A DNA stretch of 64,000 nucleotides, from sequence record PP942979.1. One strand, given 5' to 3'. Made by a program: the position numbers and the translations under genes. Below, piece by piece: positions 18,983-57,061 of this stretch. The notes under the pieces are model-generated. The model made no database searches, had not been told where the DNA came from, and saw nothing but the letters and a program-made list of their open reading frames with translations. Each line of letters starts with the position of its first letter. Positions within the stretch are counted from its first letter, which is position 1.

Positions 18983-20125
18983 TTACAGCGTAGATACGGT
19001 CGCACGAAACACCTGATACGCGCTCTGATAATCAGAGAATGTACCCAGCTGCTCAAATGCAGACTTAGGCAGATCGCTCGGTGCGCCCGCGGACGAATCA
19101 TACTTGGCAACAGTGAACGTACCACGACCACGAGCCTGTTTGATAGAGCCAGTCATTGTCGCAGTCGGTCCGAACACAACACCCGTCTTGCTACCGGCAC
19201 CCATCACAAGGATGCAATCTTCATCACCACCCATGTTAGCAACGGTAGCAGTCACGCTACGTTTCGGCGCAGGCAGTTGCATGGCTTTGAACATAGCTCT
19301 TACGTTCTCACCATCACCACCCTTCATCAGCGCAGCATACAGGAAGTCATAGCCGTTAGCGCTCGATGCGTTGCTGGTGCTAGGCATTCGAAGTTCAGCG
19401 GCAGTGCGCTCGCCTTTCTTAGCGGCCGCAGCAATCTCAGCGTCAGTTGCATCTTTGGTGGCCAGCAGTTTGATGACGTTTTTGATTGAACGCAGTTCGC
19501 CCAGATGAATCTGAACCTTCTTGACCTTTTTAAGATGGTCACCGACGAAGGTCATCAACCAGCCTTTCTGCTGCATGACAACAGCCACTTCCAGTTTCTT
19601 ATACTGGAAAGAGAACTGCTTGCCGGAAGCATATAAGAACTTACCAGCACCCGCAACAGGCTCAACAGCGCGGATGAAGTCAGGCGCATAGTCACGCGCA
19701 TCGCTTCTGATCAGACTGGAGTACGCAGGAGAGAACGTGCCTACGGTAGTTACCGGAGCCTGCGGCTTCCCAGCACGAGGCTTAGCGACGACTTTGTTCG
19801 GGTCAGTTGCTTTGATCTTGATTGCACGAAGACCGTTAATGGTAGCCACCAGCGTCTTGGCTTTATACAGGTTCTTCATCGCAGTGACAAGATTCTTGCC
19901 AGCAGCTTTCTTCGCAAGAGCGGTAGTTGCTTCTGCGTCGTTCAGCAGGTCAAGGACAGCGGACAGCTTCGCAGTGTCCAGCTCTTTGATTTTAACCAGC
20001 TCGTCAATCTTCTTAACGATAAGTTTTGCGTTCTTACCGAAAAGGATTTCAGCGTTGGCGATCTGCGTTTTGTTCGCAGCAGAGACCGACACAACAGTGC
20101 CGGACGGGAGAGTGATTTCGTGCAT
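18983..20125 (-). CDS. Basic hypothetical protein, putative internal head protein
   Basis: 380 aa Lys/Ala-rich; N-terminal VVSVSA. Confidence 0.6.
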   Translation of the reverse strand: MHEITLPSGTVVSVSAANKTQIANAEILFGKNAKLIVKKIDELVKIKELDTAKLSAVLDLLNDAEATTALAKKAAGKNLVTAMKNLYKAKTLVATINGLRAIKIKATDPNKVVAKPRAGKPQAPVTTVGTFSPAYSSLIRSDARDYAPDFIRAVEPVAGAGKFLYASGKQFSFQYKKLEVAVVMQQKGWLMTFVGDHLKKVKKVQIHLGELRSIKNVIKLLATKDATDAEIAAAAKKGERTAAELRMPSTSNASSANGYDFLYAALMKGGDGENVRAMFKAMQLPAPKRSVTATVANMGGDEDCILVMGAGSKTGVVFGPTATMTGSIKQARGRGTFTVAKYDSSAGAPSDLPKSAFEQLGTFSDYQSAYQVFRATVSTL

Positions 20126-20134
20126 TGCTGTTCC

Positions 20135-20701
20135 TTAACGTTTCTTGTTGGTCCAGTTGTTCTGCTTAACAGGCGCAGGTGAGGTGTTCTCTTCCGTGAT
20201 TTCGTCGTCGGCGTCTTCTTCCTCTTCCTCGACGTCATCTACTTCCTGCTCCGGCTCAGGTTGCGGTTCAGCCTGTTTAACAGGAGTAGTCTCCATCACA
20301 GACGCAGCGAGAGGTGCCTGAGACACAGTATTTACAGTAGCAACCGGCTCTGCCTCTACGGCCTGACGCGCTTTAGCTACTTCACCAACAGCGTGTTCGT
20401 GAATAACGTCAGTGGTAAGCAACGCACCCTTATCCTTCAGGATTGCATCTGCTTTCTCTTGATCCCATTGATCCCACAGGATATCAAGAGTCTTGTAGCC
20501 ATAGTTCATGCCCTTCGGCAGCTTACCGCGACCATTGAACGGCAGCCCATTAGAAGGAGTAGCTGGCTCGAACTCGTCCATCATCTCCCACTTACGTTTA
20601 GCCTCGATACACTTCGGGCCCCAGACGCCATCGCAGGCACCGTCGTACAGACCAAGCATGGTCATGATGACCTGTAGCTTCTGATAGAATTTGTTCAGCA
20701 T
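20135..20701 (-). CDS. Peptidoglycan-binding-domain protein with acidic tail
   Basis: LQVIMTMLGLYDGACDGVWGPKCIEA fits the PG_binding_1 pattern; Glu/Asp-rich C-terminus. Confidence 0.6.
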   Translation of the reverse strand: MLNKFYQKLQVIMTMLGLYDGACDGVWGPKCIEAKRKWEMMDEFEPATPSNGLPFNGRGKLPKGMNYGYKTLDILWDQWDQEKADAILKDKGALLTTDVIHEHAVGEVAKARQAVEAEPVATVNTVSQAPLAASVMETTPVKQAEPQPEPEQEVDDVEEEEEDADDEITEENTSPAPVKQNNWTNKKR

Positions 20702-20717
20702 AACGTGTTGTCCTATT

Positions 20718-20746
20718 AAAGAAGGAGGGGCCGAAGCCCCTTACCT
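20718..20746 (-). terminator. Hairpin/terminator after SNF2 gene
   Basis: AGGGGC-TTCG-GCCCCT followed by a pyrimidine run. Confidence 0.65.
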
Positions 20747-20747
20747 T

Positions 20748-23700
20748 TTAGACTGATTTGTTTTTCGACATGGTCAATTTCAACTTGTCGAGTGCGCCAG
20801 TGACCTTCTTGATGTTCGTGACGGTGTAGCCTGCTTTCACGATCTTATTGATACGTGCTTTTGCAGTAGCCGCATTCTTCACGAACCCAATCCACATACC
20901 TGGCGCCTGGTCGAACGTACCGAACTTACGAGTGTTCGGGATTTTCGTGCCGACGAAGCGTTTCATCTGCGGGTTGGTCTTCAGGTCGAACATGATACGC
21001 AGTCTGTCTTCCATGATCATCGGGTATGCCTTGACGTGTTTCTTATCGGAGGCAGACTTGTGACGAACGAGGAAGAACTTCGGCAGTTGCTCTTGACCTT
21101 TCGTTGCCAGCTTGACGTTGAAGCCCATACGCGGAGTAGACTCGTCAAAGAAGTCCAGTACGAACTCCAGACGCTTCTCCGACATACGGTCGAATTCCAG
21201 CTTCTTCTTAACTTCGATGAAGTCCAGCATCGCTTCAAAGTCAGCGTAGTACGCACAGTCGTAGTAAACGTAATCGCCGAACTCAACGAACTCGAAGTCC
21301 TTGAGTGCTTTCGCATCAGGGTCAGTCGCGTTCGCATACAGTGCCACAAATCCGTTGTACACGGTAGGAGTCAGCTCCAGTGCCATATCAGCACCAGTCG
21401 CTTCTGCAACAGCTTTCGCACCAGGCTTCATACGAGTCGTAGTGTTAGCCAAAGGAGGCAGGTCAGCAGACTTACGGCGACGAACTTTCTTGGCAGCTTC
21501 TTCAACACCTTCGTTGATTGGCTTACCAGTCTCTTTGTTCGAAGCGCGTTTGGCAGCACGGGCAGCTTTACGCGCCTGAGCTTCAACCTTCTTCTCTGTC
21601 TCTTTCGTATCAGCCGTCTGCGTTTCATCAGCAACGGTGTCTTCAACTTCAACACGGTTAGCTTCTGCGTTTGCACGTTTGCGATCTTTCTCGTTCGCCC
21701 ACGGCTTACGCTGTTCAAAGAAACGTTTCAGGTCGTTCTTGTCTACCTTAGTGGCAATGTGAACTTTGGTCGCAGGAATTGCAACGGTCTCACCAGAGCC
21801 AGCCAGACGAACACGAACGGTACTGATAGGACTATCGCCACGCAGCTTGCCGTCAACCATACGCACAGTCACAGACACGACAACACCGTTACCGAACTCA
21901 GTCACGACAGGTGCACGATTCAGAGAATCTTTCAGCCCTTCGCCGCTAGTGAAGTTACGGTTACGCGCCCAATCTAACAGACGCTCAGTGCCCCAGCCAT
22001 TACGATCAGGGATCTTCTGGTTAGCAACAAGCGGAGTCTGATCCATCACGCGGAAGTCAGTCAGAGCCGGAGTAGCTGGCAGAGCCTGCATTGCTGCAAC
22101 CGTTGTACGGCGCATCTCCTGGAACTCTTGAGATTCGATTTCGTTCAGGTCACGCTTCGCAAGGAAGTAGTCACCGAAGTCTTCCATCGTGTTGTTGTCG
22201 ATCAGCAGCTTCGCGCTCATTTTGATCGGGTCGAGCTTGTACTGATCGAGTGCTTCGTAACGCTGGTTGCCTTTCTCGTCGAAGCGAGTCTTCTCCAGAG
22301 TTTTCCACATCAGACGAGCAACCTTACCAACCTCCAAGGTCTTGTTCGTCATAACCCAGTCGATGAACACAACTTCACGAGCCATGTCACCCGGCTTACC
22401 GTTCTCGTCCAGCTTAGCAGCAGCAACGTCAGGACGGAAGATACGCGCAGTAGACTGATCGTAAGTACCCGGTGACCACGGAGTATCGCAGCGGATGATG
22501 CGGCTACCCATCTGCATGTTGTGGCCTTCGGAGATTGCCTGCTCGTTCGCAATCAGAATCTGGACGTTGTTGTCAGTTTTGAATGCGTCGAGGTTAGCGT
22601 CTTTGTTCTGACCCAGCTTACCAACTTCACCATGATACACCACAGCAACTTTCTTATAGTTGGCTGGCAGTGCGTTGTAGATGGCGTTTGCTGCACGAAC
22701 GTAACGCGTAAAGACAATCAACTTGCCCTGTACTTCTGGCTTCCAGTAGTCCGGATCGTCCGGAGGCGGAACCATTGAAGGCGGCAGCGCTTGACGCTTG
22801 AACTCTTCGGACTGCTTACGTGCCAGATACTTCTGACCGTTATAGACAGCAATGTCCAGTTCACGCGGCTCTACGCCCGGCTTCCATTCGAAGATCTGTT
22901 GCTCACCAATCATACGGTCGCGTTCTGGCTGCACTTCGAAGTGCTTACGAATACGGTCGATGATGGTCAGCACTTTCGCAGAAACGAAGTTGGTAACGCC
23001 GGCGGCTTCAAACGTCATACGAGCAACGTCATCACCCATAGGGTCAGTCAGCATCATTTCCATACGCTGGAAGTACATGTTCAGGTCAGCGTTGCTTGCC
23101 AGCAGTGCGCCTAAATCATCACCCTCTTCGATCTCGTCTTCGTCAATATCATCAGCGGCCGTGGCTTCTGCACCACCAGCTTCGTCGTCATCGTCATCGC
23201 TGCTACCGGCTTTCTTCTTCGCAGACTTGGCAGCTTCGTCCAACTTCTCCAGCACTTCTGCGTACATTGCGTTATACACTTCCTGGTGCAGCGCAGAGTT
23301 TGGAACTGACGGATCATCGATCTCAACCTGAATGAAGGTATCAATCGGGTTCGGCAGCATGAACGCCCAATGCTTACGCTTGAACGAGATGAACGCTGTA
23401 TGGTTTGCCATACGTGAGTGCGCACGACGAATCATTTCAATGTCGTCTTTCGCGCCGTCATATGCAACGTCCAGTGAGTCACCGAACATAGCAGGCGTCA
23501 TCAGTGCAGCCTGACCAACAATATCACGCACACGGTCAGTTACCAGCGTACCAGTAGCGATACGTGCATAGCGAACGGACGGAGCAGTGAACACCGCTTT
23601 GGTGTTGAAGTGAACCTGAGAGCCAGCCTGACCACCAGAGAAGTTCTTCACTTTATGCGACTCGTCGAGCAGCACATAGCTGAACTTGAAGCGATTAACG

Positions 23701-26597
23701 AACTCTACAGCACCACGCACACGAACACGCACACCGCCAATGTCAACGTTGAACGTACCAGTTTGCAAATAGCTCAGGCCGACGATGAAGATAGTGTTAC
23801 GAGGTGACTGAGAGATCACGTCGTACATACGTTCTTCGCCCCACGTGTTCACGGTATCAGCAGTAATAGGCACTGCGTTCCAGCCGTCAACGATTTTGTG
23901 TAGGTCGTCACACCAGTTCGCTACGAGGTTGGAAGGACAGATGATCAGAGGGCGAATGCCTTCTTCACCTAAGTCATCCAGCTCTTTGATTGTGGCTGCA
24001 ATATCAGTCAGACCGATGATTGTCTTACCACCGCCAGGCGCGATAAAGATTGTTGCAAAGCGCGGACGACGACGCAGAGTTTTGTGCGCTTCGACCTGAT
24101 GCGGCAGTAATGCTGCACCGTCTTTCAGACCTGGGATGCGAATATCATCAATGGTGATACCGCTGTCAGGTTTCAGGCGTTCGATCTCAGTCTCGGCCGA
24201 TTCGAAAATCTCAAGAGACTTAGGAATCACATCGCTGTACATCGTAGCGAATGGCAGGATGATCTGTTGCAGACGACCTGAGCCTGGAGCTTGTTCGCTT
24301 TCAATCAGAGAACTAAACAATTTCTTGCGATCGGCGCGTACAAGCGACTGCGCCATTTCACGGTACACCGCACCACCGAAGTAGTTGTTAAGGCGTGCCA
24401 TGTCAGACAGCTTGGACTTCTCACCCATCACAAAGTAGTGGGTGTGAGACGGCAGTGATTCGGTGGCAGCCTGAATGCTTCCCATCTCGCTCATGGAAGT
24501 TGCAATAAGGTTAGAACCACGCAGACCAGCAGCATCGTTCAGCACACGAATCATGATACGCAGCATCGTCAGAGCAGGGCGCTCGTTAGACAGGTCTGGT
24601 ACCGAGAAGTCGTTAGCGATCAGATTCTCATAGAGGTCTTTGTCCATCGGGCTTTCAGACAGAGCCGCATCTTCTGCGTCCATGCCGATTGCTTTACGTG
24701 CATTCTCCACCAGCGTTTTCAGGTCAGGAACTTGTTTGTTCTTGAGCATGAACTCGTAGGTCTGGCAGGTCTGCGCGATGATGTTCAGCAGCTCAGGCAG
24801 GTTAGAACCTTCTGTGGAGTTGTATTTGATCGTGGACTCACTCACACTCTCAACCAACTTACCGCTACCGGACTCAACTTTGGCAGCTTCAATCAGCGTG
24901 TCATACGACGGACGGAACAGAGCCATACCACCAGATGCCTGATTGTGATAAATGTTACCAATCACGTTCGCAGCAGAACGGAAGTTAGGCGCTTCACCCG
25001 GCTCCGCAAAGTCGTAGCCGAGAGCATCAGCAACGTCCAGAGAGTTAGGTGACTTCATGCCGACAGTACGAGTTTCGTTAACTGCCAGCCCGCCGCCGTT
25101 CGAGGTGTTCACGATCAGAGAGAAGTCAGGGTCGATACCGATGCACACGTCACTGAAACGAGACAGTGATTTGGCTTTCGTCTGCACATCACGGTCGAAG
25201 TCCAGATTACCGTTCTGGATAGCGAACATGTTGGTACGCAGCGTGTCGTGCTCAGTAGATAGCGGCACACCTTTTTCGAACAGGTCTTCGAGGACACCGT
25301 TGAGCGTGGTTTCGTAGGTCTTAACCATCTCAATGTCAATGTCTTCACGACGAGGCAGCACAGCCATCGTACCGTTAGGCATGATAGTCATACCGTGTTC
25401 ATCAGCAACCACGTCGTTAACCACGTAGCCGAATTTCTCACGCAGCTTTTTCAACTCAGGAAGAGAAGTGGCAGAAGTCACATAACGCGGAATACGAGCA
25501 GCACGGGTGATACCAGTACGAGTAGAACCAGCAACACGGAAGTAGTAGCTCGCCCAACCCTGGAACCAACGATACAGACACATGGTCTGAGTGTCAGCAC
25601 CCTGAGAGATATACTCCACCAGCTCTTTTTCGAAGTTAACAATCAGGCCACCTTCGACACGAATGTCGGTTGCCAGTGCTACTTCGTTGAAATCGACAGG
25701 CGTATCGTGACTGATCTTCATCGCTTGCAGCTTGCGATCAATCATCTGTTTGCCGGGGATAGAGCGGATGCCGATTGTCATGAAATCGCCCAGGCCGTCA
25801 ACTACGGATTTTTCCAAGTTGCGGAACAGGTCAATATCAATGCCGTTCATTGATGGGTGAATAGAACGCAGAGCAGCGTTATACACAGACCAGTCTTTGT
25901 CGAGCGGGATACGAATCATCTTCGTATCGAATGCGTTGGCGTTAGTGCGCTCAGTGCCAAAGATATCCTTATAGATAGTCTTCGCCACACGAATTGCAGA
26001 CTGCGCAATATCGGAGCTGTAGGTACGCAGGTTGGCGCTTTCGAAGTTCGCGTCGTTATCAACACGAGGACGGTCGCTACCCTGATTGTTCAGAACGTTG
26101 AAGTTACCGTTCGAAGCCAGCGGGCTGGTGGGGCACGGAGTACCAGACATGATAATGTCTTTGCCGCCAGGGAAGCGCGTACTGTTTTCGATGATAGCGC
26201 CAGAAGATGCAGACAGATGCTCGGCCAGAGCGGTCTTGATCTCACGACTCAGCTTATCGCCGTTCAACATCATGTTGATTTTCAGCGAGGACGCTTCGAC
26301 GTTGTTCTTGATGCGCTTAACGAAATCGTCAGGAGAGACTTCCAGCATATCTTCGAACTCTGCACCGTTAGTAACGATGTAGTTGATCAGGTCGAAGGCC
26401 GCGTAGATGCGAGCTACGGTAGAAGCGGTGAATACAGCCAGCGCCTCATAGTTACGACGGGACTTCCCTGTCGCGTACATCTTCGACGTCTTGGCGTCGA
26501 ATTCGGGCGGCAAGGGCTTGATAGCAAGTGCCTGATTAAACGTATCGGCAATTTGCTGGGTAGCCGTTGCTGACGTACTAATCATCTGATTCATCAT
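20748..26597 (-). CDS. 1949-aa SNF2-family helicase/ATPase
   Basis: LLPHQ, APGGGKT, LLDESHKVKN, IATGT, KLIVFTRY, SEGHNMQ, WSPGTYDQSTARIFR. Confidence 0.88.
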   Translation of the reverse strand: MMNQMISTSATATQQIADTFNQALAIKPLPPEFDAKTSKMYATGKSRRNYEALAVFTASTVARIYAAFDLINYIVTNGAEFEDMLEVSPDDFVKRIKNNVEASSLKINMMLNGDKLSREIKTALAEHLSASSGAIIENSTRFPGGKDIIMSGTPCPTSPLASNGNFNVLNNQGSDRPRVDNDANFESANLRTYSSDIAQSAIRVAKTIYKDIFGTERTNANAFDTKMIRIPLDKDWSVYNAALRSIHPSMNGIDIDLFRNLEKSVVDGLGDFMTIGIRSIPGKQMIDRKLQAMKISHDTPVDFNEVALATDIRVEGGLIVNFEKELVEYISQGADTQTMCLYRWFQGWASYYFRVAGSTRTGITRAARIPRYVTSATSLPELKKLREKFGYVVNDVVADEHGMTIMPNGTMAVLPRREDIDIEMVKTYETTLNGVLEDLFEKGVPLSTEHDTLRTNMFAIQNGNLDFDRDVQTKAKSLSRFSDVCIGIDPDFSLIVNTSNGGGLAVNETRTVGMKSPNSLDVADALGYDFAEPGEAPNFRSAANVIGNIYHNQASGGMALFRPSYDTLIEAAKVESGSGKLVESVSESTIKYNSTEGSNLPELLNIIAQTCQTYEFMLKNKQVPDLKTLVENARKAIGMDAEDAALSESPMDKDLYENLIANDFSVPDLSNERPALTMLRIMIRVLNDAAGLRGSNLIATSMSEMGSIQAATESLPSHTHYFVMGEKSKLSDMARLNNYFGGAVYREMAQSLVRADRKKLFSSLIESEQAPGSGRLQQIILPFATMYSDVIPKSLEIFESAETEIERLKPDSGITIDDIRIPGLKDGAALLPHQVEAHKTLRRRPRFATIFIAPGGGKTIIGLTDIAATIKELDDLGEEGIRPLIICPSNLVANWCDDLHKIVDGWNAVPITADTVNTWGEERMYDVISQSPRNTIFIVGLSYLQTGTFNVDIGGVRVRVRGAVEFVNRFKFSYVLLDESHKVKNFSGGQAGSQVHFNTKAVFTAPSVRYARIATGTLVTDRVRDIVGQAALMTPAMFGDSLDVAYDGAKDDIEMIRRAHSRMANHTAFISFKRKHWAFMLPNPIDTFIQVEIDDPSVPNSALHQEVYNAMYAEVLEKLDEAAKSAKKKAGSSDDDDDEAGGAEATAADDIDEDEIEEGDDLGALLASNADLNMYFQRMEMMLTDPMGDDVARMTFEAAGVTNFVSAKVLTIIDRIRKHFEVQPERDRMIGEQQIFEWKPGVEPRELDIAVYNGQKYLARKQSEEFKRQALPPSMVPPPDDPDYWKPEVQGKLIVFTRYVRAANAIYNALPANYKKVAVVYHGEVGKLGQNKDANLDAFKTDNNVQILIANEQAISEGHNMQMGSRIIRCDTPWSPGTYDQSTARIFRPDVAAAKLDENGKPGDMAREVVFIDWVMTNKTLEVGKVARLMWKTLEKTRFDEKGNQRYEALDQYKLDPIKMSAKLLIDNNTMEDFGDYFLAKRDLNEIESQEFQEMRRTTVAAMQALPATPALTDFRVMDQTPLVANQKIPDRNGWGTERLLDWARNRNFTSGEGLKDSLNRAPVVTEFGNGVVVSVTVRMVDGKLRGDSPISTVRVRLAGSGETVAIPATKVHIATKVDKNDLKRFFEQRKPWANEKDRKRANAEANRVEVEDTVADETQTADTKETEKKVEAQARKAARAAKRASNKETGKPINEGVEEAAKKVRRRKSADLPPLANTTTRMKPGAKAVAEATGADMALELTPTVYNGFVALYANATDPDAKALKDFEFVEFGDYVYYDCAYYADFEAMLDFIEVKKKLEFDRMSEKRLEFVLDFFDESTPRMGFNVKLATKGQEQLPKFFLVRHKSASDKKHVKAYPMIMEDRLRIMFDLKTNPQMKRFVGTKIPNTRKFGTFDQAPGMWIGFVKNAATAKARINKIVKAGYTVTNIKKVTGALDKLKLTMSKNKSV

Positions 26598-31206: not shown

Positions 31207-32281
31207 TCAGATTGCGTAGCTGGTCGTTATACCCACCTTCGATTAGCGCTCGCGCCATTGCGACGTGGTTCGAGTTAATCGTCCTCACCACTTTAGCCTG
31301 ATACTCAGGAACGTTCTGCATGTTCTGACTCAGGTTGTAGAAGTAACTACGGACGAAGTTGGTTCGTTCCACGTTGCTCGCTTCCATATCGCTTGTGTCC
31401 TGCGTAGGAGTTAGCAGCAGGTAGAGCGCAGCAAGTAATTCCGGACTCTGGTCAACTATAGGAGATACCAACGAGGCAGCAATCTTCGTCAGTCCTTTCG
31501 CAACAAAATCAACCACAGTCTTCTCGATGAACGCTGTACCAGCTTTACCTACGTTTGGCAAATACAAGCCAGGCAGGATGTAGATGCAGAAGTAAAGCGG
31601 AAAGTCTTTGCGCATCACGTCAGAGATAAGCATCTCCGAGTAGTCTTTCCAGATGTTGACGTTGAAGTGCCATTCATCGTAAGGCACGGTACGCATCAGG
31701 TTCGACACTGACAGATCTTTCACTTGGTTCGCCTGAGATGCAAGATCGCGAGCGCTTTGCGAAGGGCCAAGATTCGAACTTGATACCAGCTGGACGTAGT
31801 TGCGTGTAACAGCACCAACAGTGTTGTACACAACGTTCAGCATTTCAACACCATTACCGTTCAGTGCAAAGATAACCGAACGAGGAAGACCGATAGTGAT
31901 GTACTCGTTATTATTGTCAACGCCCCACAAGCGCCAGTAACGCCCGCGACCGAGTTGAGTCATCGGCTGCGGGAGAATACGATTAGCGCGAGGTTTCAGG
32001 CAGAACGTGAAGCAGATACCGCTGTCAATCATGATCACTGAATCATCAGGACGATTCGAATAACCCATCGACATATCGTTATCCGTCGAGTACACGTTCA
32101 CCAGAGTGAAGTTCAGCGACTTGGTGAAAGGCATCTGAGCTTCAATCAAATAGGCGAGGACTTGACGAATGATAGTATCAAGCACATAAGGAGAAGCGCT
32201 ACGCATTTGTTGTGGCCGATACTGACCACCATACGTATTCTCCTTAAATGTGCGATCTACCTTGAAATGCGTTAACGCCAT
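31175..32281 (-). CDS. Hypothetical, probably structural, protein
   Basis: 368 aa in a late operon, coupled to neighbours. Confidence 0.6.
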   Translation of the reverse strand: MALTHFKVDRTFKENTYGGQYRPQQMRSASPYVLDTIIRQVLAYLIEAQMPFTKSLNFTLVNVYSTDNDMSMGYSNRPDDSVIMIDSGICFTFCLKPRANRILPQPMTQLGRGRYWRLWGVDNNNEYITIGLPRSVIFALNGNGVEMLNVVYNTVGAVTRNYVQLVSSSNLGPSQSARDLASQANQVKDLSVSNLMRTVPYDEWHFNVNIWKDYSEMLISDVMRKDFPLYFCIYILPGLYLPNVGKAGTAFIEKTVVDFVAKGLTKIAASLVSPIVDQSPELLAALYLLLTPTQDTSDMEASNVERTNFVRSYFYNLSQNMQNVPEYQAKVVRTINSNHVAMARALIEGGYNDQLRNLIEYLGLTKAD

Positions 32282-33570
32282 TACTTGACCGACTGTTTCA
32301 GCAGGCGTTTCTGTTGCGGGTTCAGGCCCATAACATCTGCAATCTCGTCGATCTTACGCAGAGTCAGGACGCCTTTCGCAGTACCACCAGAACCGGTCAG
32401 AGAGATCTTAATGAACTCACGACCGTTACGGCCGCTGACCATCTGATGCACAACGCTGTTCTTACCACCACGTCCTGCACGAAGCGCAGTAGAGGCCATG
32501 CCCAGGATTTCAGTAACAGCTTCTTTCTTCTCGGTCGGGCTGAGGCCAGGAACGAGACGCACATACAAGCTATCGTTCTGGACGCGCACGTTATCGAAGA
32601 TTTCTTTCTTACGACCGCGAATGGTGTGCTGTTGCAGACCCAGCGTAGTGGTATCACGCAGGTTCTGAGTAGAACGGTTGATTGGCTTACGCTCACTGTA
32701 GTTCAGGAAGCCGTCGAGAGCCATCAGGTGGTTGATGGTACGCTTCATTTCAGGAGCAGTAGCAATCTGACGACCCATCGGGAAGCTACCTGGAACTTTC
32801 TCGTCAACGATTGACGTCAGGAAGTTTTCGCTGATACCGTTAGCGACCGCGATTGTGGTAGACAGTACCAGAGCATAGTTCGGGTAGTGCATACCGTCAG
32901 AGTTCACGAAGTTGTCGATGAACACATAGGTCTGGAAGCAGATTGGGTCAGTACCGGACGCGATGAAAGTACGAGTACGAATCTTCGAATAGTCTTCTTT
33001 ATTCAGAATCTTCGACAGGTAGTTGGCGATGGTTGCAGCCAGCTTGGTATGTTCTTTCGGCGCGCCGTTTTTAACGTCGATGCTCATGAGCTTAACCAGT
33101 TTGGTCTGCTGGTCTTTCGCCTGAGTAATAACGTTGAGCAGAGACTTAGCGGCTGCGTTCTGATCTTTGAATGCGCTGAAAGTCTTGCTGTTCAGAATCT
33201 GGTAGGCAACGGACAGTTCACCAATTGCCTGAGACAGTTGGCTTACCTGCTGGTTGTATTGAGCTTTGCTCTTAACGTCAGAAATATCGATCTTAGACAG
33301 GTCGATAACTTGGTTCAGGTCAATCGCTTTTGCCTGTTTGCCTTTGATTGAGCCTTCGATATCGGAAAGTTCGATGGCCTTAGCGCTGACGGACAGGAGT
33401 TTCTGCGGGATTGTAACTGACGTGGCGTTTGCGATAACTTTATCGAGTACGTTACGGAACTCTTTCGCTGTGCGGGCACCACGTAAGGCAGTCATGTTCC
33501 CAGAGCTATAGTCAACAGATGCGCTGATACTGCTAACTTCATTGTTTTTGGCAGTCTTAGCCATGATCAT
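32281..33570 (-). CDS. Putative virion/head protein
   Basis: 429 aa, TAATTT promoter, N-terminal VSSISA and LLSVSA. Confidence 0.6.
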   Translation of the reverse strand: MIMAKTAKNNEVSSISASVDYSSGNMTALRGARTAKEFRNVLDKVIANATSVTIPQKLLSVSAKAIELSDIEGSIKGKQAKAIDLNQVIDLSKIDISDVKSKAQYNQQVSQLSQAIGELSVAYQILNSKTFSAFKDQNAAAKSLLNVITQAKDQQTKLVKLMSIDVKNGAPKEHTKLAATIANYLSKILNKEDYSKIRTRTFIASGTDPICFQTYVFIDNFVNSDGMHYPNYALVLSTTIAVANGISENFLTSIVDEKVPGSFPMGRQIATAPEMKRTINHLMALDGFLNYSERKPINRSTQNLRDTTTLGLQQHTIRGRKKEIFDNVRVQNDSLYVRLVPGLSPTEKKEAVTEILGMASTALRAGRGGKNSVVHQMVSGRNGREFIKISLTGSGGTAKGVLTLRKIDEIADVMGLNPQQKRLLKQSVK

Positions 33571-33676
33571 CCTCTACTGGGTCTAGTAATCATATCGAAT
33601 AAAAATTAGCGACTCAGGCGTGTTTTGTCCGATATAGTGTTCGCACTGACTTTACAAATTTTGGTCGCTATAAACG

Positions 33677-35685: not shown

Positions 35686-37572
35686 TTACTTCATTTTAGC
35701 GAGGCGTTCACGACGTGCTTTAGCTTCCTCACGCATGTAGACGGCTTCTTCTTTTGCTTCTGCAAGAGCTATTTCAAGCGCACGATCACAGATGGCTTGG
35801 ATCACATGCTTCGGAGATTCATTTGGCTCAACCAGAAAATTACCGCTACGTGATAGCACCTCAGTATCAGGATAGAGTTCCTCTCTGGCCTGAGTTATAC
35901 ACAGCTCCTCGTCGATGCGGTAGATTAACGTGGCCAGCTCTGTCTTCTTGAACTTGTTCTCCTTACGCTCAAACAGAGGACGCAGTTTAGGGTGGAAGTC
36001 TCTGCGAGCATCAATAGCCACATACTTCCACCCATCAAATACCTTCTGCGCACATTCATAGTAGCGAGCATCTACACTGTCCTTGTATCGCTCAAGGCTT
36101 GCGCGTGTTGCAGCAGGGCAGATAGGAGACATGTTGGCTAGTGAGCCGATGGCGGGAGCAAGCACGTACTCGTCTCTATAGCTATCACCTACCACGTATT
36201 CTTCGTCTACATATTTGGTCTGCACTTCGCCTGTATTAACGCGGCACGCATTGTACCAGAATGCACTTTCAGGATTTTTGGTATACTTAACGAACGACCA
36301 AATCTGCGAGAGTGCGGCAGGGTATGACCAGTTCTGGATGTTCTCTTCCCTGTTTCCGTAGAAGTCCACATCACCAAGATTCGCGTCCAAGAAGTTCTGA
36401 CGTTTAGTGTGAGGCAGCTTGTCAATGAAGATTTCCATAGCTCTAGGCCTATGCGTCAGGTACTGCCACAACTTGATCACAGTCGGGTCTTCAACACCAA
36501 GTGTATCAAAAACTATATCGAGATAGTCGCCGAACTCTTGGTAGTGTTTATTCACAAGTAGCTCGGTAGCGGTGCGCACATAAAACATAGGCTGCCCCCA
36601 CTTCTCACGCGCGAGCGCAAGAGCAATGCTCGGATATCGGTCCATATAACTCCGTGCAATGTCTTCTCCGTCTTTAGTGCGCTTTGCAGCAATCAAACGT
36701 TTAACAAACGTGTTGACGTCACCATGAATAAGAGGACTTTCGAGATCATAGTCAAACTCCTCCCAGCGGCGATCTGGATAGAGCTTGCTGCTTAGTTCGT
36801 ATATGCCTTTACGTTCGGTTGTTGCGAGGAACGGATTGATGTGCTCGTCAAGCCACTCCTGCAGCACGTGGACGAAAGGCATCTTAGCATCAGGATAGGC
36901 AAACTCGACCAGATAGAGAGCGTTCACCTTTTCAGAGCCTACGAATCGATCGGACGCTTTAATCTTAGCCTTCTTTTCAAAGTAAGGCTTAGCTAGGCAG
37001 CGACCAATAGGCTTGTTGATGTTCTTGTCTGATGGGTCAATCAGATAGGCAACCAGAGTACCACCAGCGATATCCTGTTTGACATACTTCTTGTTCGAAC
37101 CTGTCTTCACGTTCATGCAGCTAACCCAGCCACGATCGGTGGACATACCTGCAATGTCGTATGGGTGCATTGAGATACAAATGAGCTGACGATTACGCGT
37201 AGCATTCACAATAGACTTACGATTCGGGTCAGAGTCGAACATCTTTTTGAGTTCTGGATTGTTCGATAACACACGACCAATCTTAACGATTCGACCATGC
37301 TTGTCCTTTCCTGCACCTGTCAGGTAATCGACGAGAACAATATCTTTCTCTGCCAGCGCGTCTACGATCTGAATCGGCGGCTTGACGTTTTGCGCAACGT
37401 TTTTGATCACGTTGTCGCTCTTTGCGTCTATATAGATACGCATGGCCTTGTGGCCTTTCTTACCGCTAATCTTTTCGAAAAGATTGAGTAAAGTCGTATT
37501 AGGCTTCCAACCTTTTCTGTACTTGCGGTACAACGAAGGAGGGAGAGCGGACAGACTGACTTGAATTTCCAT
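35686..37572 (-). CDS. Hypothetical protein with MEIQVSLSA N-terminus
   Basis: 628 aa, TAATTT promoter 30 nt upstream. Confidence 0.7.
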   Translation of the reverse strand: MEIQVSLSALPPSLYRKYRKGWKPNTTLLNLFEKISGKKGHKAMRIYIDAKSDNVIKNVAQNVKPPIQIVDALAEKDIVLVDYLTGAGKDKHGRIVKIGRVLSNNPELKKMFDSDPNRKSIVNATRNRQLICISMHPYDIAGMSTDRGWVSCMNVKTGSNKKYVKQDIAGGTLVAYLIDPSDKNINKPIGRCLAKPYFEKKAKIKASDRFVGSEKVNALYLVEFAYPDAKMPFVHVLQEWLDEHINPFLATTERKGIYELSSKLYPDRRWEEFDYDLESPLIHGDVNTFVKRLIAAKRTKDGEDIARSYMDRYPSIALALAREKWGQPMFYVRTATELLVNKHYQEFGDYLDIVFDTLGVEDPTVIKLWQYLTHRPRAMEIFIDKLPHTKRQNFLDANLGDVDFYGNREENIQNWSYPAALSQIWSFVKYTKNPESAFWYNACRVNTGEVQTKYVDEEYVVGDSYRDEYVLAPAIGSLANMSPICPAATRASLERYKDSVDARYYECAQKVFDGWKYVAIDARRDFHPKLRPLFERKENKFKKTELATLIYRIDEELCITQAREELYPDTEVLSRSGNFLVEPNESPKHVIQAICDRALEIALAEAKEEAVYMREEAKARRERLAKMK

Positions 37573-37630
37573 TGGGGATCTCTGTGTTCGGGTGATGATA
37601 AAAATTAGCGTAGAAACGACAAACGCCCCT

Positions 37631-39331: not shown

Positions 39332-39633
39332 TACTTACGCACACGCAATGCAGGGTCGTTCGCCTTGTCATAGCGATCAGGTCGAACGATAACAACACCG
39401 GTAGGTCCAGTTTTCACTTCCAGCAAGCCAGGAATTTCAAAACCATCGGCAGTGTCTGACACAGGGAATTTCTTCTCCAGCAGTCCACGCATCTTGGTCA
39501 GTCCTTCATTGGACTTGGCGATCTTCCCGCCCTTCATATTACGAATCAGACCAGCACTGCGACCTACGTTGAATTTGAAACCAACAGAGTTCAAAATCCC
39601 AGGCAGTGCTTTATCGATCTGAGCCGAAGTTAC
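39331..39633 (-). CDS. 100-aa -1 frameshift extension of 39630..40364
   Basis: Open -1 frame from A_AAA_AAG (39639-39633) to TAA 39331; no SD-supported start of its own. Confidence 0.65.
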   Translation of the reverse strand, partial: VTSAQIDKALPGILNSVGFKFNVGRSAGLIRNMKGGKIAKSNEGLTKMRGLLEKKFPVSDTADGFEIPGLLEVKTGPTGVVIVRPDRYDKANDPALRVRK

Positions 39634-40364
39634 TTTTTTGAAGCCACCTTGCCTGTAAGAAGTTTTGCACGTTGCTCTTTCAGTGCTTTCTTCTTAGAAG
39701 GTGAGTGGGCACCGGTGACTGCGTTTTTGTTTTTAGGGAAGAGCTTAGCCTTCTCACGGTCAATCTCTGCCTGAGTAACAGTCTTTTTCTTCGCACCTGG
39801 TTTCACCTTACGATCAGATGGAGTGCTGGCATTACCATTGACCATCTTTTCAGCTTTCATGAACTTAGGCTTGAACGCACCACGCTTACCAGTAACACCG
39901 AACTCGGTCAGCTTGGCCGCACGAATAGCTTTCAGTGCTTTGTCTGAGCCAACACCAGTTTTGATATCGGTAGCGGACAGAGGAAGATTCAAACCGCCCA
40001 GATGATGTTTCTTCGCGTGAGAGTTTGCTTCACGAATCAGAGCTTTCGCCTGCTTTATCTCAGCACTGGCTTTGGTCTTCTCGGTTTTACGAGTTTCCAT
40101 CAGCGCAGTACGCTTAGGCCCTCTAGGCAGTTGACGCACTTTAGTGGCGGCGGTATTCGATTTAATCGAAGCAGAGATGCCAGCGATAGCAGCGGCTTTA
40201 GCTTTCTTCAACAGACCAACAACTGCCTGCAATTCAGCCTTGTACTCAGTCGCTACGATCAGAGTAGTAACGCCACCGACACGAGCTACTTTATATGCCT
40301 GAGGTTTAATACGCGCAGACTCGGACGCTACGGTCTGATTAACATTGATTTTAATAAGTGCCAT
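39630..40364 (-). CDS. Lys-rich putative internal head protein
   Basis: Start moved to ATG 40364 (GAGGA SD); MALIKINVNQTVASESA. Confidence 0.75.
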   Translation of the reverse strand: MALIKINVNQTVASESARIKPQAYKVARVGGVTTLIVATEYKAELQAVVGLLKKAKAAAIAGISASIKSNTAATKVRQLPRGPKRTALMETRKTEKTKASAEIKQAKALIREANSHAKKHHLGGLNLPLSATDIKTGVGSDKALKAIRAAKLTEFGVTGKRGAFKPKFMKAEKMVNGNASTPSDRKVKPGAKKKTVTQAEIDREKAKLFPKNKNAVTGAHSPSKKKALKEQRAKLLTGKVASKK

Positions 40365-40374: not shown

Positions 40375-40977
40375 TCAAACCAGGGCTCTGCCTGGGAGAT
40401 CGAAGTTCTTACCAGCCGAGTAATCACCCAGCGCCTGATAAAGGGAGTCACGCAGCATTTGCTGAATGATATCCGAGTTATGTGCCGAAGCGTCTTTAAA
40501 AGCAACCTCGATTGCTTCTGTTCTCGGATTCAATACAGCATAACGCAGCGGGCAGATCTTTTGCACATCACACCACGCGTCGATTCTGATTTGCAAATCA
40601 GGCGTGATTGGAATACGAAAGTCTGATAGTTGAAACACAACGCTCTGGATAGGAGGAGGCGATGACTCTGACTTAACAGTGTCAGTGCCCAGCTTCTCCA
40701 TAGCCATCGCCGCGTTGTACACGGAGGAGAACTTGGTCTTCAACGTGTTTGTTTCGACGAGCTTATAGCTATTCGCAGCAAGCCCTTGACGACGCAACTT
40801 GGCAATCTTAACAACGTAATCACCAGAGTCGTCAGAAGCAAATGCAACGTAAGCGTAGAACACGAAGCCAGACGCTTCACGCAGCAACTTATGATCTAAG
40901 GCGCGGTCACCTATGATAGCATTCAGTTGTTGCAGACCCATCTGGACTTCGCGTGACAGTGAAACGTAGATTTGCAT
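40375..40977 (-). CDS. Hypothetical protein with MQIYVSLSR N-terminus
   Basis: 200 aa, coupled start. Confidence 0.7.
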   Translation of the reverse strand: MQIYVSLSREVQMGLQQLNAIIGDRALDHKLLREASGFVFYAYVAFASDDSGDYVVKIAKLRRQGLAANSYKLVETNTLKTKFSSVYNAAMAMEKLGTDTVKSESSPPPIQSVVFQLSDFRIPITPDLQIRIDAWCDVQKICPLRYAVLNPRTEAIEVAFKDASAHNSDIIQQMLRDSLYQALGDYSAGKNFDLPGRALV

Positions 40978-41315
40978 TAGCGCAGACGAGCGAGAGCCTG
41001 TTTAGCTTTTGCCAGAGTCTGTTCGTAGTTCGCTTCGTCGTCGAACTCAGGCTCCATGCGGATCTCGATGCCAGAGATATTGAAACCTACATCTTCGTCT
41101 TCATCTTTGGTCACCATGCCGAAACGTGCAACGCCGTTTTTGTAGCTGATGAAACGGAAGTCAAGAATATCTTCCGGACCGCCTAGGTCAGACGGCATAC
41201 CGTCATCCAGCAGATCGAAGAACTCTTTCTTCGTCAGTTTGCTGAACACTGCATTAATAGCAGAGGCAGATTCGGACTTAACAGCTTCGTCCAGATTCAG
41301 TTTGATAAGGGACAT
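40977..41315 (-). CDS. Acidic protein with MSLIKLNLDEAVKSESA N-terminus
   Basis: 112 aa. Confidence 0.7.
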   Translation of the reverse strand: MSLIKLNLDEAVKSESASAINAVFSKLTKKEFFDLLDDGMPSDLGGPEDILDFRFISYKNGVARFGMVTKDEDEDVGFNISGIEIRMEPEFDDEANYEQTLAKAKQALARLR

Positions 41316-41890: not shown

Positions 41891-41925
41891 AATAAAGCCC
41901 TCTGTTAGACAGACTAAAATTAGCG

Positions 41926-47038: not shown

Positions 47039-47075
47039 AAAAAGAAGGGCCACCAGCAATGGCAGCCCCGTCTTT
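47039..47075 (-). terminator. Intrinsic terminator with tandem wobble
   Basis: GGGCTGCC-ATTGCT-GGTGGCCC then TTCTTTT. Confidence 0.75.
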
Positions 47076-47523
47076 AGTAGCGTCTTGGTTTCTTTGGCTT
47101 CTTAATCTTGGTGGACTTCGGACGCTTGATACGCTGCAATGCCTTACGTGCCTCAGCAATCTGACCAGACAGAGTAGCGCGTTGTTTCTTCACGGCATCT
47201 GTATCTTGGTCAGTGCCTTTCAGTTTATCAAGGCGGTTCCACTCTTTGACCAAACGATCAACGACAGCAGCACGACTAACACGTTGCTGATTGGTACGCA
47301 CAATATCCTGCTGCGTCTTTACCGAGCGTTGCGCTTCTAATACTTTGGCACGTCCTGACTCAATGCCTTTCGTATCACCGTCAGACTGTTTTTCGTTGAG
47401 CGTCTTACGTGCCACGGTTGCTCTGCGTTGTGCTCCTTTCAGATCATCACGCGAGTTCTCTAAACTGACTTTCGTTTCTTCAAGTGGGCTGGTACGCGCA
47501 CTCAAGCTAATGAGGATTTTCAT
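47074..47523 (-). CDS. Basic coiled-coil protein with MKILISLSA N-terminus
   Basis: 149 aa, Lys/Arg-rich tail. Confidence 0.7.
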   Translation of the reverse strand: MKILISLSARTSPLEETKVSLENSRDDLKGAQRRATVARKTLNEKQSDGDTKGIESGRAKVLEAQRSVKTQQDIVRTNQQRVSRAAVVDRLVKEWNRLDKLKGTDQDTDAVKKQRATLSGQIAEARKALQRIKRPKSTKIKKPKKPRRY

Positions 47524-47538
47524 AACGGCTCCAGAAAT

Positions 47539-47566
47539 GAAAAAGGGCAGCCGAAGCCACCCTTTT
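47539..47566 (-). terminator. Intrinsic terminator, tandem-wobble family
   Basis: AGGGTGGC-TTCG-GCTGCCCT then TTTTCATTTC. Confidence 0.85.
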
Positions 47567-47654
47567 GTAGAATGGCGCGCTATGCACCCGACTGTTAAGT
47601 CTACTACGGTTATTTTACCTCGCAGTAGTCAGCGAGGAGATTGGGATCACCTCC

Positions 47655-48191
47655 TCATGCTGATTGAAGATCGACAACTTCCTCGTCTTCTATATCAGCG
47701 GCAGACCACGAACGAAGCACGGACGCATTGCCGCGATTGCCCGTCAGCATAGATTTAACTGCTGGTTTGGCATCGCGCTCTGCATAGTAGTTGCTAAGAG
47801 CGTTCTCATTAGCGAACCACAGAATGGAGTGACCACCTTTCGGGCAGATCAGGAATTGTGCTGGACGCTGCGGAACGTTCAACGTCATATAAAAATCACC
47901 AGCACCAGTAGGACCCATCATAGGCATGGGTTTCATGATCTGCATAAAATCGTTGGCATCTTTAAGGCGAGTATCGCCTAACAGCCAGAGAGCACCTTCT
48001 TCACCTTCACGCACGGCAGACAATGTACCTTTGCGAGTAGTGATTGAACCGAATACATCCTGATCAAATCGAGCCAGACCAAAGATAAGCGATGCGAGTT
48101 TCTTTAAATCAGGAGTGGTGCATGGGCTATCAATTTTCGCCATGCCCTCAGACCCAATTGTAATCTTCGACAGTGATACAAAGATTTCCAT
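47655..48191 (-). CDS. Hypothetical protein with MEIFVSLSK N-terminus
   Basis: 178 aa, TAATTT promoter. Confidence 0.7.
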   Translation of the reverse strand: MEIFVSLSKITIGSEGMAKIDSPCTTPDLKKLASLIFGLARFDQDVFGSITTRKGTLSAVREGEEGALWLLGDTRLKDANDFMQIMKPMPMMGPTGAGDFYMTLNVPQRPAQFLICPKGGHSILWFANENALSNYYAERDAKPAVKSMLTGNRGNASVLRSWSAADIEDEEVVDLQSA

Positions 48192-54129: not shown

Positions 54130-54132
54130 ACT

Positions 54133-55749: not shown

Positions 55750-55789
55750 ATCATGATTACCTGATTTTTCTATCGTTTCTTTACAGTTT

Positions 55790-56400
55790 CAGACAACTCT
55801 TAACCCGAAAGCTACTACAGCGCTAATGCTAGGAAGGCTAAGGCTACAGCAGGCTTGCTACAACGCTCATGGCATGCTTCAACAATAGTTCTACAGGTAC
55901 ATCTTTAGGCGGCACGTTTCAGAGACATAGAAAATAAAGAAACCATGTCCTCAGCAGCCCGAACTATAGTCCATACGCACTATAGGTAGCGATCTAGCGG
56001 AAATCCCTAGGTCGTCTAAACCGTGTAAATTTTCCGTCAAAAACAGTCCGTTTTTTAACCAAACGCCCTTTTTGACTCTGAAAATGAGGAAAATCCGAGA
56101 AAAATCAAGGACTTTCTCCTCTTTTCTACCTCGGTGAAACTCAAATTGCATCATCAGGTTGAGTATTTGAGATATCGGCATGTACATGCAGCTTCATCGC
56201 ACTATAGTCACGCGGAATTAGCGCCTCAGTCCCAAAACCCTCGCGCTAGGAGCTATAACCCTGACGTAGAACCGTGTGCTGAGGGCCCAAAACATCAAAC
56301 CGTCAATAGACTGGTTATTTGGTACCAATACAGAGGATTCTTAATCCTCACACGTAGACGTCAAAAGGAGATGCTCCTAGCGCGATTCCATAGGAAACTG
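55790..56400. other. Origin-like non-coding region
   Basis: ~600 bp with no credible gene; GCTA/CTACAG/ACTATAG repeats, phased A/T tracts, palindromes, 13-bp inverted repeat. Confidence 0.5.
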
Positions 56401-56401
56401 G

Positions 56402-57061
56402 TTACTTTTTGCGCGATACTTGTTTTCCGAGTTTTACGCCGATCTGCGTCATAATACGCTTAACGGTCTCTCCATCGTGCTCTTCCATAGCGTTTGCGAG
56501 CCTTTCGCCCTGTTCGCGCGATAGCTCAGGCATAACCATTTTAAGCATCTGCGAACGCAGTTTTGCGCTCTTGGATTTGCCTTTCGAGACAGACACGCCT
56601 TCATTCGCCTTAAGCGCACTGCTAATCGCTTTCTGAACACGACGATCACCAAAAATGTCGCCGAATATGTCACCGAACAGGTCCTTGAACGACAATCCGC
56701 CGCCCATAATGTCGTCTTTCGTGAAACGAACAGGTACACCCAGCGCATTCACTTTATTGCAATGCACCGATTCGACCTGATTCGTTGTACGTCCACCAGC
56801 ACGGAAGTTCTCGTCAGGGCGTGACGCTTTGCCCTCTGCACCGGGCTTAGTGTTGCCGTTGCGCAAATCTGGATCGCCTTCAACCTGTTTGTTTTGATCA
56901 AACATATCGTCGGCAGTTTCGCTTTGATTTGGGTCGAACGGGATCTTACCTGTCAGCTTGTTTGCGTCTGGCCAGCTATCAGGAATATCAGACGCAGGCT
57001 GTGCCTTGTTCGTCATATCACCGTTTGCTTCACCACTCAAACTGATCTTAATACGAGTCAT
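56402..57061 (-). CDS. Hypothetical protein with MTRIKISLSG N-terminus
   Basis: 219 aa, GGAG SD, late operon. Confidence 0.7.
   Translation of the reverse strand: MTRIKISLSGEANGDMTNKAQPASDIPDSWPDANKLTGKIPFDPNQSETADDMFDQNKQVEGDPDLRNGNTKPGAEGKASRPDENFRAGGRTTNQVESVHCNKVNALGVPVRFTKDDIMGGGLSFKDLFGDIFGDIFGDRRVQKAISSALKANEGVSVSKGKSKSAKLRSQMLKMVMPELSREQGERLANAMEEHDGETVKRIMTQIGVKLGKQVSRKK

Follow-up and report, generated by a model that had tools for sequence, protein, structure and literature searches.

Why should proteins that have nothing else in common begin with the same few amino acids? The question is raised by a 64,000-nucleotide stretch (the window) of the genome of Erwinia phage phB78 (genus Alexandravirus, 261,824 bp, PP942979.1), which covers positions 124001-188000 of the record, window base 1 being record base 124001. 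A sequence-only reading of this window had proposed that about eleven unrelated proteins share one N-terminal signal, which directs them into the capsid and is processed there. In the present analysis two distinct leaders were found instead of one. The first of them, leader A, is an 8-amino-acid (aa) peptide that is shared among proteins and has no Glu at its predicted cleavage site. From sequence comparisons we consider it reasonably likely that leader A is a capsid-targeting propeptide in the style of phage T4, ending in the motif of a gp21-like prohead protease, this motif being small-x-small and not x-x-Glu.

Phage phB78 belongs to a group of 'hairy' jumbo myoviruses that includes Y3, Yoloswag, AD1 and JA11; PaBG, Lu11 and phiRSL1 are more distant (PMC7412058, PMC6143709). 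Among the comparison phages, Y3 is a member of the genus Sasquatchvirus and JA11 of Salmondvirus. The phB78 genome encodes its own sigma factor, and its head module is related to those of PaBG and RSL1; for these two reasons a nuclear import signal of the Chimallivirus type was dropped. The head module contains an HK97-fold major capsid protein (MCP, SHZ78_133), a gp21-like candidate for the prohead protease (SHZ78_137) and an acidic, scaffold-like protein of 672 aa (SHZ78_135), for which the label 'ATPase' in the record is wrong. Genes are referred to below by the last three digits of their SHZ78 names (g135 for SHZ78_135).

Two leaders and the proteins that carry them

Leader A is a real and modular element, which is selected at the peptide level and conserved across genera. 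The near-identical starts that had been noticed on six dissimilar proteins of the window all follow the pattern M-x-[IV]-x-[VI]-S-L-S (Table 1). A scan of the N-termini of all 322 annotated phB78 proteins revealed five further leader-A genes outside the window (g114, which encodes a NUDIX protein, g220, g229, g238 and the variant g071), bringing the number in the genome to eleven. When residues 2-9 of the proteins were compared all against all, 39 pairs had at least five identities out of eight, whereas shuffling of the columns yielded 2.7 such pairs on average and 10 at most, and the control residues 31-38 yielded three. The excess of N-terminal pairs was due to a single cluster of 10 proteins. 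The Ser codons (TCA, AGT, AGC, TCT, TCC, TCG) and the Leu codons (CTG, TTG, CTT, CTA) differ among the copies of the leader, which indicates that selection acts on the peptide and not on the DNA; a DNA-level repeat, a promoter or a translation element was rejected on the same ground. No similarity was detected by BLASTP among the carriers past approximately the first ten residues. Taking into account that the rest of the proteins share nothing, leader A is a portable module, and paralogy of the carriers was rejected.

Orthologues in Y3 and JA11 keep leader A at 30-47% identity of the protein bodies, and there are five leader-bearing genes in these phages (Y3_206 and JA11_180, 181, 188 and 190) that have no homologue in phB78. 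In a set of 26 leaders, position P3 of the predicted cleavage site was always Ser, P2 was Leu in 24 and P1 was Ser in 23, with Ala, Gly and Asn occurring once each; P1' was chiefly Ala or Lys. Phage phiRSL1 has a shared leader of its own, M-x-Y-x-I-[STK]-A-A-x-x-R-L-x-[AG]-[ST]-E-V…, which is approximately 20 aa long and is carried by four small proteins (ORF123, 124, 127 and 133) adjoining the giant helicase, protease and scaffold genes.

The eleven N-termini quoted in the sequence-only reading all match the translations, with the qualification that for the genes at 26597 and 33570 the record begins one and two codons later (26594 and 33564). The second shared start, which had been seen on the genes at 40364 and 41315, was confirmed, and g239 outside the window was recognized as its third member. 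This leader B has the consensus M-[AS]-L-I-K-[IL]-[NE]…[VA]-x-S-[ET]-S-A in the three phB78 genes. Three looser cases (26597, 20125 and 33570) do have S-x-S-A near the N-terminus, but not the same leader.

Table 1. Leader-bearing genes and late-promoter-like motifs in the window (window positions; minus-strand genes start at the higher coordinate; a slash marks the predicted cut)
Feature	Position	Strand	Product	N-terminus or motif	Remarks
SHZ78_168	18983..20125	-	380 aa	V-V-S-V-S/A at residues 11-16	degenerate leader B
SHZ78_170	20748..26597	-	1948-aa SNF2-family ATPase	(M)MNQMISTS/A	
SHZ78_178	32281..33570	-	427-429 aa	V-S-S-I-S/A near N-terminus	
SHZ78_181	35686..37572	-	628 aa	leader A MEIQVSLS/A	leader codons 37549-37572
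SHZ78_184	38822..39331	-	169 aa	leader A MQIFVSLS/A	Y3_193 orthologue keeps leader
SHZ78_186	39630..40364	-	244 aa, Lys-rich, net charge +39	leader B MALIKINVNQTVASES/A	
SHZ78_187	40375..40977	-	200 aa	leader A MQIYVSLS/R	internal VKSES, residues 101-105
SHZ78_188	40977..41315	-	112 aa	leader B MSLIKLNLDEAVKSES/A	orthologue Y3_196
SHZ78_197	47074..47523	-	149 aa, net charge +21, coiled-coil-like	leader A MKILISLS/A	
SHZ78_198	47655..48191	-	178 aa	leader A MEIFVSLS/K	ATAATTT upstream
SHZ78_209	56402..57061	-	219 aa	leader A MTRIKISLS/G	leader shifted by one residue
Late-promoter-like motif	37602..37609	-		GCTAATTT	before g181
Late-promoter-like motif	33603-33610			GCTAATTT	g178
Late-promoter-like motif	41917-41924			GCTAATTT	endolysin
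Late-promoter-like motif	13923-13930			GCTAATTT	

In g181 a widespread N-terminal domain is joined to a C-terminal half made up of helical repeats. Homologues of g170 have the Pfam domains SNF2_N and Helicase_C, and in 16 of them both Ser residues of S-x-S-A are invariant, x being T, V, M or A. Among the orthologous proteins, Y3_174, the orthologue of g168, carries a full leader B and starts MSLIKLGNLDGDVVESTS/A; Y3_184 keeps the S-I-S of g178, a gene located upstream of the head-tail connector gene; and Y3_194 keeps the leader of g186, a leader of the same kind, ending in A-V-A, being present on PaBG gp83. Leader-bearing orthologues of g187 are Y3_195 (VSLA) and JA11_179 (29.5% body identity), those of g197 are Y3_205 and JA11_189, and a similar, basic PaBG protein, gp221, starts with the leader MQLLIAMA/SA. 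The leader of g198 was kept in 11 of 11 orthologues from IMG/VR, and the g209 orthologue Y3_220 starts MRVMISLN/S. Low-complexity sequence makes up much of several carriers, among them g197 and, outside the window, g220 and g229 (net charges of -31 and -14), and such charge-rich proteins are reminiscent of internal head proteins.

Searches of the carriers with Pfam and PHROGs found only the NUDIX domain of g114, which begins at residue 22; the others belong to families of unknown function. The ART cargo that had been suggested was not detected among the phB78 carriers: g184 matched no Pfam or ART profile, and a profile built from four leader-bearing ART-PolyVal proteins of relatives gave nothing significant against the 322 phB78 proteins (E=1.2 for g184). 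Leader-bearing ART-PolyVal proteins do occur, however, in the relatives themselves (see below). SHZ78_182 (38180-38545, -), a putative DUF2778 domain protein, is located inside the leader-bearing cluster yet has no leader.

A late-promoter-like motif, GCTAATTT, was found in 15 copies in the genome (approximately 8 expected), 11 of them 30-50 nucleotides (nt) before a start codon, and in five copies in the window (1.6 expected). It precedes the genes of the tail sheath, the PAAR spike, a 778-aa tail protein and the endolysin as well as the portal operon. The same motif stands directly before g181 (37 nt upstream of the start), g178 (approximately 40 nt) and g238, and close variants head the operons with g114, g184-g188 and g209, the last of which is downstream of g210, a gene with ACTAATTT 30 nt before its start. 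Because the motif or its close variants precede the carriers or their operons, most carriers are probably late genes. The statement that most carriers follow TAATTT promoters is valid in the direct sense for only 3 of the 11, but several others are in TAATTT-headed operons. A different arrangement is common to g197 (47524-47590, -) and g229 (+), where a GC-rich hairpin and a T-run upstream are followed by a conserved TCATT(T)CTGGAG approximately 10 nt before the ATG; this combination of terminator and ribosome-binding site is unlike the TAATTT units. Directly before the portal gene, GCTAATTT is followed by g005 (+), whose 71-aa product has VKSES at residues 14-18. The label 'DNA ligase' of g005 cannot be right, since 71 aa is too small; the gene possibly codes for a minor-sized protein of the head or its core.

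The S-x-S motif on head proteins and its variation among phages

S-x-S, with which leader A ends, is abundant in the scaffold-like protein g135, where 22 copies were counted against 7.5 expected (0 of 2000 shuffles), giving the lowest p value of the proteome (p=1e-5). The enrichment is specific for this spacing and residue: Ser at spacings 0, 2 or 3 was not enriched, nor was A-x-A (7 copies, 9.4 expected). g135 also contains LVSLSR, a copy of the leader end. In the MCP, S-x-S was found 0-2 residues after a conserved G-x-phi-phi in 31 of 31 homologues with at least 55% identity, and it is located in a hypervariable linker, where the middle residue and the surroundings vary freely. The phB78 linker reads V-H-S-H-S/G (residues 64-69, S-x-S at 66-68), and the HK97-like fold begins at residue 74, as judged by alignment to phage G gp27 (PDB 6wkk). 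The N-terminal region of the protease cannot otherwise be aligned, yet it keeps phi-x-S-x-S-F in most of 30 homologues, down to approximately 45% identity. IRSES occurs both in the portal (residues 38-42) and in the protease, and VKSES is common to g005, g187 and g188. With g136 (record 106631-107755, -), located between the protease and the scaffold-like genes, the head module has a further peptidase, to judge by the Pfam match (KMPT-N, 3e-30) and the zincin motif VITHELAHF.

In the more distant phages the motif is changed on leader, scaffold-like protein and MCP alike. At least 13 clustered genes of Lu11 start with MKIQLAVA, A-x-A replacing S-x-S. The scaffold-like protein of Lu11 has 31 A-x-A (16.2 expected, 0 of 2000 shuffles) and only two S-x-S (3.4 expected) and contains QLAVAAA, and the MCP linker reads QVATA/SS. 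In PaBG the leaders end in IAMA/SA, the MCP has AYA/SG, and the scaffold-like gp82 contains 27 A-x-A (13.1 expected, 0 of 2000 shuffles), including IAMASA; the PaBG leader-B proteins end in A-V-A where phB78 reads S-E-S. This covariation between the motifs of leader, scaffold and MCP is, at the level of sequence, the strongest argument for recognition of the leader by the head protease. It also modifies the idea of a Ser-based code, which describes phB78 correctly as S-x-S; the code is not strictly serine but small-x-small, with A-x-A in Lu11 and PaBG. PaBG gp228 (+), a LigT-like protein annotated as 'putative RNA ligase LigT', has a leader-like start, MQIKVAMYSA.

A degenerate DNA pattern, which represented one codon version of the leader, was searched in the 2.9 million contigs of IMG/VR and gave 17 matches, 16 of which were orthologues of g198, g187 or g238 on contigs of approximately 260 kb belonging to the phB78 lineage. 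An unrelated contig of 265 kb has seven consecutive leader-A genes, coding for a 256-aa protein, a SprT-like peptidase, a 187-aa protein, two ART-PolyVal proteins and two homologues of g181, and nothing else on it resembles phB78. The ART-PolyVal proteins have S-L-S leaders on this contig and in JA11, and A-V-A in Lu11. As they carry the local leader of each phage, the leader follows the phage and not the cargo.

The g181 family shows the leader in alternation with a T4-type sequence. The first approximately 270 residues of g181 constitute a domain with 2065 representative homologues, which is repeated within some polyvalent-type proteins of 1800 aa, one of them with Pfam ART-PolyVal. Leaders were counted in the 150 best-scoring cluster representatives. 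In 73 of the 150 a small-x-small motif was located right before the start of the conserved domain, A-L-x-P-S-x-Y-R-K (S-L-S in 44; median leader length 8 aa); thus the small-x-small leader is not private to phB78 but occurs in at least 73 of these representatives. At exactly the same position, 42 of the 150 had [LIVMF]-x-E (median leader length 9 aa), for example Atu_ph07 (…DLIE/ALKPS) and RsoM2USA (…TLME/ALPLS). Sites of the T4 protease have the form L/I-x-E. One domain is therefore preceded either by a T4-type site or by S-L-S, as would be expected if both were prohead-protease sites on a short targeting peptide.

In an AF2 model of g181, which was based on 60 homologues and had a mean pLDDT of 93, only residues 1-6 were below 50, and according to the model the leader is an appendage outside the g181 fold. 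No PDB fold matched the modelled N-terminal domain, and BFVD gave only uncharacterised phage proteins. Considering that S134, H136, Y138, D139, S144, R147, W149, S151 and C152 are invariant in the 60 homologues and that no PDB fold was matched, this domain is probably an uncharacterised enzyme.

Proposed capsid targeting and competing explanations

If leader A is a capsid-targeting propeptide, the carriers would be made late in infection, and the hydrophobic residues of the tag would attach them to the core of the forming prohead, with the acidic g135 as the likely partner. The shell would close around them, and the gp21-like serine protease SHZ78_137 would cleave S-x-S behind its second Ser. 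The protease is also predicted to use this motif to trim the MCP (after S68), the portal and its own chain, and to fragment the scaffold. The peptide of approximately eight residues would leave, whereas the mature cargo would stay with the DNA and would probably be ejected into the cell infected next. This cargo would comprise the NUDIX hydrolase, the 628-aa g181, small proteins with a strong basic or acidic character and, by way of other N-terminal tags, the 1948-aa SNF2 ATPase. We infer core binding, cleavage and head retention of the leader-A carriers, and their ejection purely by analogy. Leader B is probably a capsid-targeting propeptide as well.

Data on PaBG virions are consistent with capsid targeting. 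Mass spectrometry identified fourteen virion proteins, several of them proteolytically processed (PMC7412058), and the proteins identified include gp202 (221 kDa) and gp83 (PMC7412058, Table 1). We found that gp202 is the homologue of g170, with the N-terminus …NSLS/A, and that gp83 has a leader of type B. The PaBG MCP was reported to lose about 20% of its mass on maturation (PMC7412058), and A-P-S/A at residue 71 would fit this loss. Thus the proposal of a capsid-targeting and processing signal retains the support of motif sharing, covariation, alternation with L-x-E, late transcription units and the PaBG virion proteins, but the strictly Ser-based code and the single leader had to be given up.

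Several observations weigh against this interpretation. The S-x-S motif has a low information content and is enriched 1.28-fold in the whole proteome, similarly to T-x-T and E-x-E. It is also found at the N-termini of g127, g143, g115 and g095, which belong to tail or other modules, where a prohead protease should not act. Upstream of g220 a sigma70-like promoter is apparent rather than a late one, so that this carrier looks early. The first MCP site, LALSES/T, is not S-x-S in more distant relatives, and as a general MCP cleavage site it was rejected for this reason. Leader B resembles the N-termini of g098 (MSLTKINPSL) and g103 (MSLIKVKTGL; both -) in the tail-fibre region and might therefore be a different kind of anchor. 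The searched literature yielded no proteomic, N-terminal sequencing or genetic support for the leader-A carriers, the Y3 virion proteome being outside its scope. The same scope applies to the view that the leader is unreported, with which we agree: it was not mentioned in the searched literature on Alexandravirus, Y3, AD1, PaBG, RSL1 and jumbo-phage comparative genomics. The tail-fibre proteins of PaBG share M-x-GLTR[IV]P, and leader B may have its origin in a fibre anchor or work in a similar way.

The assignment of the protease is also subject to doubt. The model used was that of the Alexandra protease, which is 93% identical to SHZ78_137 (AF2, pLDDT 82.8). Its only notable PDB match was T4 gp21 (5jbl, probability 0.77), a weak one (E=0.06, TM 0.48), and Pfam S77 did not match SHZ78_137. 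In the 31 sequences compared His124 and Ser181 are invariant, and a Cys/His cluster is present. S77-type prohead peptidases have been assigned to the phage group of phB78 by Iyer et al. (PMC7824862). Judging from the model, membership of SHZ78_137 in the gp21 fold family is plausible, if weakly so. The characterised proteases of the gp21/S80 type (T4, phiKZ, SPN3US) all cleave behind the Glu of a three-residue motif (PMC5694885), and a small residue at P1 would therefore be unprecedented in this family.

The leader could alternatively be a cleavable pro-peptide for another protease, such as the zincin g136, the peptidase g204 or a host enzyme, and serve for activation or timing of cytoplasmic proteins rather than for loading into the capsid. 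Two more peptidases are in fact encoded, g136 (KMPT-N 3e-30, HExxH) and SHZ78_204, annotated as 'peptidase', and the presence of N-terminal S-x-S on proteins outside the head module would agree with their involvement. Small-x-small is, moreover, the rule of other peptidase families, namely signal peptidase I and herpesvirus assemblin. We regard this explanation as unlikely: the motif co-varies with scaffold-like composition and the MCP linker in three lineages and is kept at the N-terminus of the gp21-like protease, and on account of both facts the head protease is favoured; in addition, PaBG proteins with the motif were found in virions (PMC7412058). An uncleaved strand for docking to a partner other than the prohead core (a chaperone, the tail, the 'hair' structures or a host structure) is also improbable and ranks next. 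In its favour, leader B starts like g098 and g103, and g127 (MLILLSESA) is located between tail-tube genes; tail fibres often have N-terminal anchors in common. Docking leaves unexplained, however, that the final tripeptide of the leader follows the motif of scaffold and MCP and alternates with L-x-E in one family, and the carriers include enzymes of the kind found among injected effectors (NUDIX, and ART-PolyVal in relatives) and highly charged disordered proteins, as is typical of internal head proteins.

A signal that sets stability or turnover (as a degron or an anti-degron), or a feature that governs the expression level through the nascent peptide or through translation initiation, would be in keeping with the shortness of the leader, its place at the extreme N-terminus and the fact that several carriers are small and disordered. 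Nevertheless, we find such a role quite improbable, since the freely varying codons exclude an mRNA feature, and a degron is not expected to co-vary with capsid and scaffold motifs or to be confined to jumbo phages with this head module. It is least probable, and indeed very hard to maintain, that the similarity is trivial, caused either by a common fold whose first beta-strand is paralogous or by a DNA repeat or recombination scar. In the g181 family the leader does abut the conserved domain and is present in many homologues, but the protein bodies of the carriers show no similarity, synonymous codons differ, no segment other than the leader has low confidence in a model with a pLDDT of 93, and the leader is attached to NUDIX, ART-PolyVal and SprT-like domains as well as to disordered proteins. 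Capsid targeting by way of the prohead protease thus remains our preferred explanation of leader A.

Relation to known systems and other features of the region

The capsid targeting sequence (CTS) of T4 was reportedly described on IPI-III and Alt by Mullaney and Black in 1996. It is a propeptide of 10-20 residues on the internal proteins and Alt, which is needed for incorporation into the core and is removed by gp21 (PMC5694885). The CTS and leader A are alike in that each is a short N-terminal peptide on unrelated proteins, which ends in a head-protease motif, in the case of leader A a predicted one. In both phages, again by prediction in phB78, the motif is also used for trimming of the MCP and fragmentation of the scaffold, and the variable cargo resembles anti-host effectors. 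In contrast to the CTS, the phB78 leader has another sequence, a length of 8 aa, a predicted P1 of Ser, Ala or Gly instead of Glu, at least 11 carriers and a second leader type; it belongs to the Alexandravirus, Sasquatchvirus, Salmondvirus, Lu11 and PaBG lineages. Having no Glu at the predicted site, leader A falls outside the T4 sequence family, although it appears to act in the same manner. The principle is known from the CTS; what seems to be new is a small-x-small, shorter leader with many carriers in another phage lineage.

In phiKZ, 201phi2-1 and SPN3US, proteases of family S80 process head and ejection proteins at S/A/G-x-E and A-x-E (PMC5694885, PMC7411985, PMC10052503). These phages are likewise jumbo phages with many internal or ejection proteins, a gp21-related protease and a three-residue motif with a small P3, but their propeptides are mostly longer than 100 aa, are not shared and are always cut after Glu. 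For DarB of phage P1, a 250-kDa anti-restriction protein of the helicase type, no more than the first 30 residues are needed for loading into the head (PMC9024508). It resembles g170 in description, both being giant helicase-type proteins with an N-terminal signal, which is putative in g170. The DarB signal has not been reported as shared by many proteins or as a protease site, and the P1 MCP is cut after Glu120. Domains of the ART-PolyVal type in polyvalent proteins are predicted injected effectors (Iyer et al. 2017, PMC5512222). Polyvalent proteins and leader carriers have several domains in common (ART-PolyVal, SprT-like, zincin, NUDIX and the N-terminal domain of g181), and packaging and injection are predicted for both, but whereas the former are one giant fusion, the carriers of phB78 and its relatives are separate small proteins, each with a leader ('monovalent' delivery).

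At P1 and P3, herpesvirus assemblin and signal peptidase I both favour small residues (A-x-A; V- or L-x-A/S). The likeness of leader A to their substrates is limited to this rule, although assemblin shares the gp21 fold (PMC5694885). In a Sec-type signal peptide, a positively charged n-region and a hydrophobic h-region of at least 10 residues stand before A-x-A. With only 4-5 residues before S-L-S, often with Glu or Gln as residue 2, leader A lacks a hydrophobic h-region and is not a Sec signal.

If leader A is a capsid-targeting propeptide, the head-internal and probably injected proteins of this jumbo-phage group, which includes biocontrol phages of fire blight and soft rot, could be listed directly from genome sequences, almost all of them being 'hypothetical' at present. 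Among the fast-evolving candidates for counter-defence effectors would be the NUDIX hydrolase, the giant SNF2 ATPase, the ART-PolyVal proteins, the SprT-like peptidase and the g181 domain, which looks like an enzyme. Proteases of the gp21/assemblin type would not be confined to Glu at P1, and the last three residues of the tag would report the protease specificity of any such phage; comparing leader, scaffold and MCP linker for covariation would offer a general and testable route from genomes to prohead-protease specificity. Like the T4 CTS before it, the 8-residue tag could also be used to package foreign proteins, here in large capsids. A broader proposal, to which we give as much credence as doubt, is that in a large branch of jumbo phages, most of them uncultured, the protease specificity moved from Glu to small residues, and that a portable 8-residue tag co-evolved with it, addressing dozens of anti-host effectors to the capsid for injection. 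The tag would end in S-x-S in the Alexandravirus/Sasquatchvirus/Salmondvirus clade and in A-x-A in Lu11 and PaBG, and the effectors would be single-domain counterparts of polyvalent proteins, the same domains having L-x-E tags in T4-type phages.

Some other features of the window were noted. No tRNA genes were found in it. The start of SHZ78_208 (54133-55467, -; 444 aa in the record) is probably mis-called, since the open reading frame extends to a GTG at 55749, giving 538 aa, and the Y3 orthologue also has 538 aa and starts with V. Upstream of this gene, approximately 650 bp (55750-56401) are without an annotated gene. The record describes SHZ78_214 (59933-61702, +), which has orthologues in Y3 and JA11, as a protein with an inverse-autotransporter (intimin-like) beta-barrel domain, which is not usual in phage genomes.

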